A stretch of 63,608 bases of DNA, counting the filler, from Octopus bimaculoides (Eukaryota): assembly GCF_001194135.2 (NCBI RefSeq). It is 6 parts of 6 records of this genome, joined end to end, with 100 filler letters (N's around TTAATTAATTAA, not from the genome) between each part and the next. Parts side by side here need not be neighbours in the genome. Positions count along the whole stretch, not along the records: positions 1 to 31,406 come from NC_068997.1; 5 more parts are not named here. One strand, given 5' to 3'. A model generated the notes under the pieces. It saw only the letters and a list, made by a program, of their open reading frames with translations. It did no database searches and was not told the origin of the DNA. The translations under genes and the position numbers were made by a program. Numbering within the stretch: position 1 is the first letter of the stretch; each line of letters begins with the position of its first letter. Shown piece after piece: positions 1,145 to 16,318 of the stretch.

Positions 1145-1179
1145 TTGGTTAGCTGTTGGTCGTAACTGAATTCGATGTT
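1145..1179 (-). CDS. Exon 5 (35-nt microexon) of unannotated spliced gene; K/HRIQLRPTANQ
   Basis: Acceptor ttcttgtctttttttttAG, donor CAA|GTAAGT; phase 1 in, phase 0 out, open and in phase with exon 4. Confidence 0.7.
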
Positions 1180-1249
1180 CTAAAAAAAAAGACAAGAATT
1201 TATGGATGAGGACGAAAAAGGACTGAGGTAATTCAGGTAATTGTGCTCG

Positions 1250-2420
1250 TAATTCGGTTTTCATGCCTACCTTCACCTATGTTCATCAATGTAGTGTAGT
1301 GATCGCGAATACAAGAGACCAAAATGGAGTTGCTCCGAGAGGTCTATGGAATAGAGGCACTCGATAAGGTGGATAGCTCGGAGATCAATGAGTCTTTCCA
1401 GGCCGACCGCTACTTTTCCAAGTTGAAAAGTCAATGTACTGCTACTACAGATATGTGGTAAGAATGTCGCCGGAAAGAATCGCAAGACGGAATTTTCAAA
1501 CCGAGCGAATCGGCTCGAAACCTAAGAGTAGACCACGAGTAAGATAGTTAGATAATACTCATAGTTTCAGTTGGTCACGCTTGGGAATCCAACAGGAAAG
1601 TCTAACGCGGGTTATTTCTGACAGGGCTTTATGGAGGAGGTGCCTGAGAATTTTACCCTCACGACTATCCTACGTATAAAGGAAGAAATGGATGGGTAGA
1701 TATATTTATAATTGATTGACTTGAGGTTATTAAATAAACAGGATCTGACTAAAAGCATTCAGATGCTCAGAAACTAAGTAGAGGTAATGTTTCTTTTTAA
1801 CGATCAGTCAGAAGTGAGAAGCACCATCTATAGCCTTGTAAAGAGCCTCCGAGAAGGCACAAACTATGACTTTTTAAAAGGTCTTCGTGACTGATGGCAA
1901 AGAGGGCAGAAAGTATCCTCAAAACGGTGACCTAGTCTAAATGATTGTAACAGAGCAGATTCTTATCCTATTGACATCCAAGGGTCAGGCAGCGACATGA
2001 AACAAGCAACGTCATAAACAGGTTGTAGTGGGATTTGAACTCATAAAGCATAGAGATGGAACATTTAAAAAAAAATTGTTCTCACGAGAAAAGACAGTGT
2101 TCAAGGCTTTTTACAGGAGCTTCAAGACTGGTGGGAGAAAAAGCGGTGGAAGAAAAGGTGGGAGAAAAGAGGTGGGAAAGATGGTGGGAGAAAAGAGGAG
2201 GAAAGATGGACTCTTCAAACTGGGAACCTGACTTGAATGCTTGCAATAGAGTACAAATCCGCTCGGCTAAGGTCTCAGATTGGTACTTTGTACTTTATTT
2301 CACCAGCATTAAAAAAGTGAAGGTGATCTCGGCAGAATTTGTGAAGGCAAGGAGCCAAAATAAAAATATGGGGAAACATTTTCTCCGATGCCACACCGAC
2401 TCTACTAATTTCTCAAGGTA
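1250..2420 (+). mobile_element. Possible highly decayed Tx1/L1-like LINE remnant
   Basis: GC-richer block; 2290-2360 reads VLYFTSIKKVKVISAEFVKAR, loosely like the Tx1 C-terminus at 30700; many stops. Confidence 0.3.
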
Positions 2421-2669
2421 AGAGGTAGCAGTATATACCTGCATGAGTTAATTTTAGATAATTACATACGAAGAATCTCTGTTTTGTAGGGTAGTCTCTG
2501 GGATCCGAGAAAGACGATTTTGCAATTTCCTGCTCATTAATCTGCACAAATTATTTGCTTACGGTGATCAAATAATCGTGCTGCACACTACCTCATGTCT
2601 TCCCTCAAATCGTCATTATCTGTGCAGATGCTTCATGTCAGATCCGAAAGTGATCCTAGAGCAACATAT

Positions 2670-2775
2670 AATGAAGTGTTTTGCTCAAGAGCACAATGCG
2701 CCAGTCCAGGAATCGAACTCACGATATCGCGATTGTAAGCACAACACTCTAACCACTAGGTCATGCGCCTTCATA
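2670..2775 (-). mobile_element. SINE family C head fragment
   Basis: TGAAGTGTTTTGCTCAAGAGCACAA..GGAATCGAACTC..CTAACCACT, reverse complement of tRNA-like A/B-box head. Confidence 0.75.
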
Positions 2776-3691
2776 TAGAATTAAACTGTATATAGTAAGC
2801 TCATATGAACCATGAGAACACTTTAGAGAATATATACAAGGAAATATATAAAAGCAAAAACTTTTGTAGATGTACCTCGAGCAGGAGGAGAGTTTAAAAT
2901 TTTCAGATGCGACCCTCCTGGCTAATATTTATCATAACTGTGTATCTCGACCAAACATCATCCATGGTAGGCCATCAGTATTAACCTAATCATTTCAGGA
3001 ACGCTCGTTGTAAGAGCAAATAACTCTGCTGTTGGGAATTCTTTGTTATTTCCCATGCATTGTAATTTCCGTAATCAAATGTATGAAAACAATTTTGGCG
3101 AGGAGCGGGGAAAAGACATAAAAAAAAAAAAATGCTCAAAAATGTATTGAAGACCAGAATAAAAGGATTCATAATATTATTGTCTTCTTCACTAGAACTT
3201 TTTTTCTTAAATTATAAACATTTATTTTAAAATTATAGTTTCTTATTTATTGTTTATCTTACAAACACCGGATAATTTCTATGTATGTTTTAAATATAAA
3301 ATCAATAACAGCGAAGTTTCCAACTAAGTTTCGTTGAATTCCATTTTAAAGGTTCTTGTTGCAAGCATCGTCTGCTTGGTTTTTCAGAGCAGGAAAACAT
3401 AAACATCCCTAATGTCAGATATTTTGGTGTTTTGGTGCAACCCCGAGTTACATATGGCGATGATCATTACTTCTCCGTATAGGTGCTGCTTTCGTCTCTT
3501 ATAGAGATTTTCTTAACGAGCTATTTTTTTTTACTACAAAATCAATGACTGTATATCAGTTAATTTCTAATATATTGCAAGCTGGGGTAAACTACTACTC
3601 TGTCTTGCAGACGAGAATCCATTACCAAAGATGACCATAATAAGGGCGAAGCCGAACGGTCTGGTTGTCTCGATAGCTAGAATAGGAATGA

Positions 3692-3693
<2 letters not shown>

Positions 3694-3760
<67 letters not shown>
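3694..3760. repeat. (CT)n microsatellite
   Basis: Pure dinucleotide run. Confidence 0.98.
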
Positions 3761-3764
<4 letters not shown>

Positions 3765-4240
3765 GCAATATATACCGAGTACGAAGCGTACTGAATAACC
3801 AGCTGGAGGAGGCGTCCTCCTGGGGTTAAAATAGCAGTATCGTCTGTTCTTCCAGAACACTCCTGTTTAGACGGTGACAATCATTATTTTTGAGTATCGC
3901 TACTGCTTTCCTCTCTTGTAGAGATTATCTTAATTAGCTAGTTTATTTAAATAATTTTGTATATGTTTTTATTCTGATAAGTAAGGATTTAATCGGAACC
4001 GGAAACAACATATATGTTGGGTTAGTCCACATTATTCCATAGGGAGAATAGGGCCGGTTTTCCGGTTTTCTTCGGGTATATATTCTTCCCTGGTCCGTCG
4101 TAGGATTACTCATTTGTACCAGCTGAACTCCAGAGCCCAGGAGGGGACACAGTGTGTTAATATTGAAACGATGAGGAGGCGAGATGAAAGAAGGGAACAT
4201 TGTGTTGTTATTAACAAAAATATGGCATTAATGTACTCAC

Positions 4241-4268
4241 TTCTCTCTGGTAAAGGAGGTCGCTCGTC
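4241..4268 (-). CDS. Exon 4 (28-nt microexon) of unannotated spliced gene; DERPPLPER
   Basis: Acceptor ctttgtcttttctctattttcAG, donor GAA|GTGAGT; phase 0 in, phase 1 out, matches exons 3 and 5. Confidence 0.75.
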
Positions 4269-4449
4269 CTGAAAATAGAGAAAAGACAAAGCTTATATCC
4301 ATCCATCCATCCACCCCCACAAACACCACATACACACACATACACACACATACGCACGTATATATGTACGTATGTATGCATACATGTATGTATGTACGTA
4401 CGTATGTATGTATGCATGTATGTATGTATGGTGTCAAAGACCAAAATTA

Positions 4450-4630
4450 TGAAGTCTGTTTATTGATCAACATGCCTTGTTATCATAACATCTCTGCAAA
4501 AGGATTTGACAAGGTCAGAAAATATAAAAATTTCCTCAATGAAATCGAAAAACATGGTTTCTCAAAGTAATTGTTATATTAGCGATTATAGGAACACTTG
4601 GAATGATAAAAAAAACAACAGAAAGCATTT
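4450..4630 (+). mobile_element. R4/Dong-clade LINE C-terminal (RLE) fragment
   Basis: EVCLLINMPCYHNISAKGFDKVRKYK..IIGTLGMIKK aligns by eye with the RLE fragments at 19240 and 44000. Confidence 0.6.
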
Positions 4631-4684
4631 GAGGATGATCCCTGGTTTACCATCCATTCAAGAAGTGCGATAGGTTATCTAAAT

Positions 4685-14861: not shown

Positions 14862-15410
14862 AAAGAGCAGTACATGCCATCAAAGTGACACTGAAGTAGA
14901 AAATATACGAAGCCCAGTATGCCCATCATGTCTACCCATCTGATAAGGGTACACTAGGTACATGCATCACAACTATATGTACGCGAAATGGTGATCTCAT
15001 ATCAAGATAAACAGCGCATGATCTTACAGGTGGGGCCCAGTTAGAATTTTCTTCAGGTTGAGTAACCCATTCTGCTCAAAAGGTCCTTGAACAAGGGTTG
15101 TTTAAGTATGTTGAACGAAACACCCATGTTTCCAGAGGTGAATTACTCAAACTTCAAAGAATTCCTCTCAGCAAATAGCCATGATGCTCCTCCACCGTGA
15201 TCAGAGATGCACATATGATGTGCCACGAAAGGACAGACATGCTCAGCTAGTTAAGGCAAGACAACTGACAAGCAAATCTGTGGTATCGGACAGAATATTT
15301 GTTGTATTCCATCTTTTTTTACCAAGACAAAACAATGTACAAGATAACACTTCCAATCAGATGAGATAAGAAGTCACGAGAGCCACTGCCTGGTACTGCA
15401 ATTAGGCATT
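14862..15410 (-). repeat. Unclassified interspersed repeat E whose end abuts (TAA)n
   Basis: TTGAGTGAG..GAGCAGTACATGC..ATCAAA.TGACAC directly after a (TTA)n run; same terminus at 15996-16035. Confidence 0.6.
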
Positions 15411-15446
15411 TATTTCATGTAGTTGTGTAAACATTGGTGTTTATTA

Positions 15447-15499
<53 letters not shown>

Positions 15500-15502
<3 letters not shown>

Positions 15503-15693
15503 TTAGCACGTCGAGCGAAATGCTTAGCAGTATTTCATCTGCCGCTACGTTCTGAGTTCAAATTTCGCCGATGTCGACTTTGCTTTTTATCCTTTCGGGC
15601 TGATAAATTAAGTGCCAGTTGAATACTGGGAGTCGATGTGATCGACTAATCCCCTGTCCCCAAATTTGAGGCCTTGTGCTTCCAGTAGAAAGC

Positions 15694-15695
<2 letters not shown>
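15500..15695 (+). mobile_element. SINE family B
   Basis: TTAGCACG..GAAATGCTTAGC..GTTCTGAGTTCAAATT core. Confidence 0.85.
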
Positions 15696-15745
<50 letters not shown>

Positions 15746-15952
15746 TAACAACAATAACAACAACAATAATAATAATGATAATAACAATAATAATAATAAT
15801 GATAATAATAATAACGATGATGATAATAATAATAATAATNNNNNNNNNNAATAATAATAATAATAATAATAATGATAACAACAATAACAACAACAATAAT
15901 AATAATGATAATAACAATAATAATAATAATGATAATAATAATAACGATGATG

Positions 15953-15984
<32 letters not shown>

Positions 15985-16032
15985 TATTATTATTATTGAG
16001 TGAGCGAGCAGTACATGCTATCAAATTGACAC

Positions 16033-16094
<62 letters not shown>

Positions 16095-16110
16095 AATAAT
16101 AATAATAATA
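15696..16110. repeat. Compound (TAA/CAA/GAT)n microsatellites
   Basis: Triplet arrays in both orientations. Confidence 0.95.
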
Positions 16111-16293
16111 TTAAATATAGGTAGAGGGTAAGAAATAAAAGAAGTGGGGGTGCTGATAAATTAAATCGACTGAAGAAATATAAATGACGAAATGGGAGGA
16201 AATAAGATTTGAAGTGAAGAATGTGAATAGGCATTTAAAGACATTTCTTGCGGGGTTCTACAGAGCTTTTGCTTATTGTTTATATTTACTTAC

Positions 16294-16318
16294 TTTCGTA
16301 GCCTGCTGACTCAGCCAT
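16294..16318 (-). CDS. Candidate first coding exon of unannotated spliced gene; MAESAGYE + phase 1
   Basis: gcggtgATGG context, in-frame TAA 4 codons upstream, donor AAA|GTAAGT; phase matches exon 2. Confidence 0.6.

Follow-up and report, generated by a model that had tools for sequence, protein, structure and literature searches.

Five short minus-strand segments in a stretch of Octopus bimaculoides DNA are, we believe with high confidence, genuine exons, and the chain they form most probably represents the 5' two-thirds of the annotated protein-coding gene LOC106868210. The stretch, hereafter the window, is 63,608 nucleotides (nt) long, filler included, and the part of it that carries the gene belongs to chromosome CM046617.1 (assembly GCA_001194135.2), as an exact match of the 639-amino-acid product of a neighbouring open reading frame (ORF) attests. 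A preliminary description of the window had presented the segments as a hidden five-exon gene on the minus strand, running off the left edge. That a real multi-exon protein-coding gene occupies this strand and continues past the edge is borne out by the presence of the same exons in orthologous models of three Octopus species. It is not hidden, being already listed in RefSeq and UniProt as LOC106868210 and A0A0L8HW95, uncharacterised, and what we present is a corrected gene model and not a new gene. Overall, the earlier observation is partly confirmed: it is real, but it recovers only part of an annotated gene, with some of it joined wrongly, and the gene appears to be restricted to Octopus.

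The chain and its counterparts in public databases

The chain comprises positions 16294-16318, 7145-7303, 5429-5529, 4241-4268 and 1145-1179 on the minus strand, together 348 nt that translate into 116 amino acids. Segments, phases (1-1-0-1-0) and peptide were reproduced exactly as first described; all junctions have a GT donor and a pyrimidine-rich AG acceptor, and each of the five exons is single-copy in the window. An exhaustive HMMER search with the peptide encoded by the 159-nt segment (7146-7301, minus strand) returned a single protein, XP_014768858.1, identical at 100% over 52 amino acids (residues 93-144). This is the uncharacterized protein LOC106868210 of O. bimaculoides, 259 amino acids in length, and the 264-amino-acid UniProt entry A0A0L8HW95 (A0A0L8HW95_OCTBM) belongs to the same cluster. 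By exact spliced mapping, both proteins fall on 7145-7303, 5429-5529, 4241-4268 and 1145-1179, with boundaries identical to those of chain exons 2-5, and the proposed junctions 7145>5529, 5429>4268 and 4241>1179, as well as the donor at 1145, are thus those of the annotated models.

Both public models also use an upstream exon (9232-9361) and three exons that lie to the left of the window, and they differ from each other in the first exon alone, which is 12916-13059 in RefSeq (start 13059) and 10478-10636 in UniProt (start 10636). The public models and the chain therefore agree in locus, strand and four exons, and each is defective at the 5' end in its own way: the public models lack the apparent true exon 1 (16294-16318) and exon 2, and open with first exons that are not backed by orthology, whereas in the chain exon 1 is correct and exons 2 and 3 are missing. 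A literature search found no paper mentioning the gene identifiers.

Orthologues and a ten-exon gene model

A search with XP_014768858.1 retrieved orthologues in two other species, LOC115230293 in O. sinensis and CAI9735093.1 in O. vulgaris, each sharing its contig or chromosome with the orthologues of the laccase-2-like gene that neighbours LOC106868210 in the window. In addition to this synteny, the orthologues equal the O. bimaculoides gene in exon number, phases and splice sites; they differ in that their assemblies are gapless, so that a 434-nt exon 2 is present, and in that the lengths of exons 6 and 8 differ by one codon. They begin MADSGNYEK where chain exon 1 reads MAESAGYEK, and their first coding exon, like that of the chain, is 25 nt long. 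The gapless O. sinensis locus holds 10 coding exons, of 25, 434, 130, 159, 101, 31, 35, 54, 48 and 84 nt, from which three isoforms, X1-X3, of 366, 348 and 313 amino acids are predicted, X2 without the 54-nt exon and X3 without the 159-nt exon. Given the way in which variants are called at NCBI, three Gnomon isoforms presumably imply transcript support; at the same time, it weighs against our reading that all of the gene models, those of the orthologues included, are computational predictions.

On the strength of these comparisons, the O. bimaculoides gene is predicted to have 10 coding exons (25, 434, 130, 159, 101, 28/31, 35, 54, 45/48 and 84 nt) and to encode a protein of ~366 amino acids, within which the five chain segments would be exons 1, 4, 5, 6 and 7. 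O. bimaculoides and O. vulgaris have kept the donor and acceptor of every exon that they share, the weak GTAAT donor of exon 5 among them. The frame, too, is conserved in these related octopods, the absence of which, along with that of spliced reads, the preliminary description had named as grounds for abandoning the gene: only 3-nt insertions and deletions (indels) separate the coding sequences. It is because of this orthology, and not because of intrinsic signals, that the chain can be taken to consist of real exons.

In the direction of transcription, the gene is preceded by a block 86% identical to its O. vulgaris counterpart (locus L005), in which two elements are invariant: a TATAAA box at 16487..16492 (minus strand), ~170 nt upstream of the start codon and within the motif GTCATATAAA(G/A)GTGACGAA, and an inverted CCAAT, AGCCAATTG on the plus strand at ~16569-16577, common to O. 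vulgaris. The region upstream of exon 1 is accordingly a putative promoter. A four-codon upstream ORF in the 5' untranslated region (16357-16343, minus strand; ATG ACA ATT CAC TGA) lies in a 15-nt insertion that O. vulgaris does not have, and is probably of no consequence. The coding part of exon 1 (E1; 16294..16318, minus strand) runs 25 nt from the ATG, reads MAESAGYE(K) and ends in a phase 1 donor, GTAAGTAAAT; ATG and donor are both conserved. Missing from both public O. bimaculoides models and matching the first coding exon of the orthologues, this chain exon appears to be the true start of the gene, and a better one than either public model offers.

Exon 3 (E3; 9232..9361, minus strand; 130 nt), reading GQNRLFIAFNELKNTTYSVKVSGCKENIPTFQCAENILSCLLP, is found in both public models and in all orthologues, and its splice sites are conserved. 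Exon 4 (E4; 7145..7303, minus strand; 159 nt), the second of the chain, is a cassette exon: it is skipped by O. sinensis X3 and by the O. vulgaris model, yet stands intact, with conserved splice sites, in the O. vulgaris genome. Exon 5 (E5; 5429..5529, minus strand; 101 nt), the third of the chain, takes its donor, GTAATT, from the earliest GT within an (ATT)n microsatellite; the site scores weakly and is kept as GTAATA in O. vulgaris. The two microexons follow. Exon 6 (E6; 4241..4268, minus strand), chain exon 4, has 28 nt against 31 nt in the orthologues and encodes an invariant PPLPERK, and exon 7 (E7; 1145..1179, minus strand), chain exon 5, has 35 nt. The preliminary description had pointed to the adjacent sequence on the left for more exons, and three are indeed found there, past a gap of 1301 N: the 54-nt cassette exon E7b, E8 and E9, lying 1.7, 3.5 and 4.4 kb beyond position 1. 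The gap itself (L004 23060-24360) is directly to the left of window position 1, in the intron that separates exon 7 from E7b.

Assembly gaps and the missing second exon

Runs of N interrupt the chain's intron 1 at 8498-9036, 9456-9465, 9662-10184, 11349-12133, 13433-13971 and 15840-15849, and its intron 2 at 6891-6965; none lies inside or touches any of the five chain exons. With all gaps intronic, the chain exons are therefore spread over three separate contig pieces of the scaffold. We compared each gap with the gapless O. vulgaris locus (L005) and found colinear flanks at every one of them. Gaps 6891-6965 and 8498-9036 sit within insertions specific to O. bimaculoides, whose O. vulgaris counterparts measure 100 nt for the former and 3 nt for the latter; one alignment to O. 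vulgaris runs across the 10-N gap at 15840-15849; and gaps 9456-9465, 9662-10184 and 11349-12133 correspond to intron without any exon in the orthologues. Among all of the gaps, coding sequence is thus likely to be concealed by 13433-13971 only, and in this one case the suggestion, also made in the preliminary description, that exons might lie in the N gaps appears to have been right.

This gap (13433..13971, minus strand) is the expected site of exon 2 (E2), which in O. vulgaris and O. sinensis is 434 nt long, reads ILFIHSADGEDWSKYLQEML...FFPNTFYP and holds the part of the protein that resembles the Pfam family TIR_3. At 14067-13972 the contig can be aligned, at 89%, to L005 13432-13529; it then ends in a poly-T tract, 8 nt short of the acceptor of exon 2 (13538), and colinearity picks up again at window position 13151, which equals L005 14417. 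Between these points 887 nt of O. vulgaris, exon 2 included, have no counterpart, and the gap therefore replaces exon 2.

Directly after the gap stands a 281-nt copy of a short interspersed nuclear element (SINE; 13152..13432) that is absent from this site in O. vulgaris and is likely to have caused the assembly break. The family is ~280 nt long and is represented in L004 by four copies at 92-100% identity, at 13152-13432, 10353-10632, L004 161-440 and L004 30074-30353. Next to it, at 13056..13149 on the minus strand, tblastn and blastn detect a partial and decayed duplicate of exon 2 that is broken by in-frame stops, KITSDKI*I*KIPETHFDDY*IKVLRFMPLM, and this remnant is all that corresponds to exon 2 in the window. 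The duplicate carries identical in-frame stops in O. vulgaris (L005 14417-14518), and the tandem duplication of exon 2 is therefore older than the split between the two species. SINE-like repeats also occur elsewhere in the window, for example at 440-810 and 5946-6114.

A fast-changing protein or a decaying gene

How the gene has evolved was assessed from the 219 codons that O. bimaculoides and O. sinensis have in common. Identity is 67% at the amino acid and 80.5% at the nucleotide level, with nonsynonymous divergence (dN) of 0.21, synonymous divergence (dS) of 0.29 and dN/dS of 0.72 (0.48-1.16); the neighbouring laccase, compared with O. sinensis, has 92% amino acid identity and a dN/dS of 0.32. 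Such values invite the alternative that LOC106868210 is decaying or non-functional in O. bimaculoides, its exon 2 lost or disrupted and its other exons drifting neutrally, and several observations favour this alternative over ours. The confidence interval of dN/dS includes 1, conservation is no higher in the exons (80% nucleotide identity) than in the introns that flank them (85%), and substitutions are spread evenly across codon positions. Furthermore, exon 2 of O. bimaculoides is unobservable, its integrity being assumed, and a SINE has inserted beside the gap with a decayed duplicate of the same exon close by.

We nonetheless consider decay improbable, even if it is the strongest of the rival explanations. 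The nine observable exons are all open, with intact GT and AG sites. The coding sequence has suffered two indels, both of 3 nt, whereas 2374 nt of flanking intron have 59, of which 42 are not divisible by 3 in length, and under a neutral divergence of 20% a run of 203 codons would escape stops with a probability of 0.01. The final exon has 95% nucleotide identity, and colinearity places the SINE in the intron, ~445 nt beyond exon 2. Taken together, the pattern is that expected of a real yet fast-changing protein whose reading frame is clearly protected and whose splice sites are kept.

The 5' end of the gene

If the gene is real, its 5' end might still be that of one of the public O. bimaculoides models, with translation starting at 13059 (RefSeq) or 10636 (UniProt), as both first exons are open and splice in phase into exon 3. 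We regard this as very improbable. The RefSeq first exon begins in the decayed duplicate of exon 2 and differs from O. vulgaris by indels of 1, 17 and 5 nt, the UniProt first exon falls wholly within an antisense copy of the SINE that recurs in the locus, and both orthologues use exon 1 and exon 2 instead. Both false first exons can be traced to a single cause, namely that exon 2 is unassembled.

Still less credence is due to the chain taken literally, as a genuine isoform in which exon 1 is joined to the 159-nt exon and the protein has no TIR-like domain. The join 16294>7303 stays in frame because the skipped exons 2 and 3 total 434 + 130 = 564 nt, or 188 codons, and the gene does use cassette exons. 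However, a direct junction between exons 1 and 4 is used by none of the three O. sinensis isoforms, nor does it occur in the O. vulgaris model or in the two O. bimaculoides models. Thus, what had been proposed as a five-exon chain stands as to its segments, all of which appear to be real exons, and fails as a coding sequence, since two constitutive exons (434 and 130 nt) have been skipped.

Splice signals at chance level

Judged by its intrinsic signals, that is, by splice sites and an open frame, the chain is no better than chance. We scored splice sites with a generic donor and acceptor weight matrix and used dynamic programming to find the highest-scoring chains that stay open and in phase. 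When GT and AG sites are chained without restriction, open chains reach 5125 nt on the minus and 3597 nt on the plus strand. The plus strand, for which no gene had been proposed, has a best 5-exon chain that scores 59.4 against 47.1 for the five-segment chain. Chain end-states scoring at least 47.1 number 163-184 on either strand. The score of the five-segment chain is reached or beaten in 51 of 60 Markov-resampled windows, or in 14 of 60 if the comparison is limited to positions 1-16400. Of the exons taken singly, only that of 159 nt is rather rare: the minus strand has 2 comparable candidates and the plus strand 0, against a mean of 0.3 under the null. How strong a false candidate can be is illustrated by the best-scoring exon-like candidate of the window (793-1040, minus strand; acceptor 7.9, donor 3.9, 248 nt open), which overlaps a SINE and figures in no gene model. 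Neither of two further measures was of use: codon-usage log-odds trained on the laccase gene were powerless, cross-validated halves of the laccase itself doing no better than the null, and AT/GC skew was uninformative as a mark of a transcription unit.

The searches with the 116-amino-acid peptide might have seemed to settle the matter in the same direction, with no match in Pfam or the PDB and nothing from a word-indexed protein search. The last of these was a false negative, as follows from the presence of the chain exons in the public models: the database holds a protein that shares 108 of the 116 residues (93%), and it was the exhaustive search that found it. Negatives from word-indexed protein searches with short queries are thus unsafe as evidence of absence. 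A chance concatenation of segments in AT-rich, repeat-rich intergenic DNA, with no gene behind it, is therefore the least probable explanation of all and in effect already refuted, whatever the equal or better chains elsewhere and the failed searches may say for it, by RefSeq and UniProt models that contain the exons, by syntenic orthologues in two other species, and by conserved splice sites, a kept frame and in-frame indels.

Domains and motifs of the protein

The sole domain-like signal in the protein comes from the N-terminal part encoded by exon 2. There, the octopus sequence KILFIHSADGEDWSKYLQEMLL resembles DILIVYSPDAEEWCQYLQTLFL of BCAP, which forms strand A and helix A of the TIR domain. 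The BCAP TIR structure (5FOR) is the only PDB match for the single query P0010 (phmmer E = 1.6), and in a profile search of the PDB it is one of two weak matches, second behind a chance-level match, at E = 0.89. Pairwise, hhalign aligns it over 73 columns with E = 2.7e-4 and BLASTP over 28 amino acids with E = 5e-6, the latter being a single-pair test picked after the match was known.

Several observations limit a TIR assignment. TIR_3 (PF18567) is the top Pfam match but stays below threshold, at 17.7-19.6 bits against a gathering score of 26.1 (E = 0.001-0.004), and spans model positions 2-36 of 129, or about a quarter. The hhalign probability for 5FOR is low, at 42%. AlphaFold2, run on the O. 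sinensis protein with a 3-sequence alignment, gave a mean predicted local distance difference test (pLDDT) score of 34.9, with residues 1-166 all below 50, which makes the model unusable; at this low confidence it has a beta-rich stretch and then two helices after the TIR-like part, an order of secondary structure that would suit a DBB domain (TIG fold plus two helices). The DBB/TIG domain of BCAP (6SWS) gave an hhalign probability of 0.3% and a BLASTP E > 1, and relatives outside Octopus are likewise missing, as a profile search returned the three octopus proteins only. At this search depth, then, the protein appears to be found only in Octopus. Pfam searches of protein fragments found no DBB/TIG match even at E up to 10, no ankyrin repeat is matched by the Pfam Ank models, and NCBIfam has no match.

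BCAP (PIK3AP1), BANK1 and Dof combine an N-terminal TIR domain (TIR_3) with a DBB/TIG dimerisation domain, ankyrin repeats and an unstructured C-terminal region (PMC5241739, PMC7128310). The octopus protein is like BCAP in that TIR_3 is its best Pfam match, 5FOR its recurring PDB match and short proline motifs are present. It is unlike BCAP, BANK1 and Dof in its length of ~350 amino acids (it ends at 348-366, with no long C-terminal region), in having no ankyrin repeats and no detectable DBB similarity, and in being found only in Octopus. We do not assign it to the BCAP family. BCAP itself is roughly 800 amino acids long and reportedly recruits SH3 proteins.

By eye on the alignments, the proline motifs PPLPER in exon 6 and PILP(K/D)R in exon 9, the last, are invariant in the three species and fit the class II SH3-ligand pattern PxxPxR, and they are unchanged although the protein is only 67% identical overall. 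The preliminary description had seen here a class I ligand, RxxPxxP; the conserved core PPLPER does not fit that pattern, and would be an SH3 ligand of class II. A divergent CARD or death fold, offered in the same place as a weak guess, found no Pfam or PDB match to any death-fold family with either the 116 amino acids or the full orthologue. The label of signalling adaptor seems a reasonable guess.

One tentative possibility is that LOC106868210 encodes a small cytosolic adaptor. The exon-2 domain at its N-terminus would be a divergent BCAP-type TIR that docks onto other TIR proteins, PPLPER of exon 6 and PILPxR of exon 9, the two conserved PxxPxR motifs, would bring in partners with SH3 domains, and the alternative exons (159 nt and 54 nt) would tune the middle and the tail of the protein. 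A bolder version, which we hold to be more doubtful still, is a lineage-restricted, rapidly diversifying "mini-BCAP" of octopus innate immune signalling under diversifying selection, a cytosolic adaptor of ~350 amino acids composed of a divergent BCAP-type TIR domain, a beta-rich module and two SH3-ligand motifs, with cassette exons; in favour of such selection, dN (0.21) is no lower than the divergence of the flanking introns, ~0.16.

Neighbourhood of the gene

The laccase-2-like multicopper oxidase that provides the syntenic anchor is encoded at 24298-26217 on the minus strand by an intronless gene, whose 639-amino-acid product contains the Pfam domains Cu-oxidase_3, Cu-oxidase and Cu-oxidase_2. 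LOC106868210 lies downstream of it on the same strand, the laccase start codon being ~10 kb upstream of LOC106868210. Flanks of 10 kb anchored on the laccase in O. vulgaris and O. sinensis end at ~18640, owing to species-specific insertions, and do not reach exon 1. In O. vulgaris the laccase is present as three tandem paralogues, CAI9735094-96.

Traces of mobile elements lie nearby. At 21401-21784 on the minus strand is a remnant of a Tc1/mariner-type transposase (HTH_Tnp_Tc3_2, E = 7e-6, 26.6 bits, under the cut-off of 31.5). A run of ORFs at 26741-29903 on the plus strand contains, by eye, the reverse-transcriptase-like motifs LVTLDVIKLYTNI and RYLDDCFIIW and a GIY-YIG-like stretch, LIYVITCSGCGHNYIGQT. 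It had no Pfam match at E <= 0.01, and is reminiscent of a Penelope-like retroelement.

Implications

In AT-rich DNA, the chaining of GT and AG sites with an open frame is statistically worthless alone, and yet it can be correct; it is comparative or transcript evidence that decides. The practical gain is a curation fix, wherein chain exon 1 and the orthologues together give the correct structure for two public models with false N-termini. With the gene already listed as an uncharacterised protein, the biological value is modest, and the unassembled exon 2 is at once the largest exon and the one that bears the only domain-like signal. If the TIR lead were true, however, LOC106868210 and its orthologues would be candidates for a cephalopod-specific immune adaptor.

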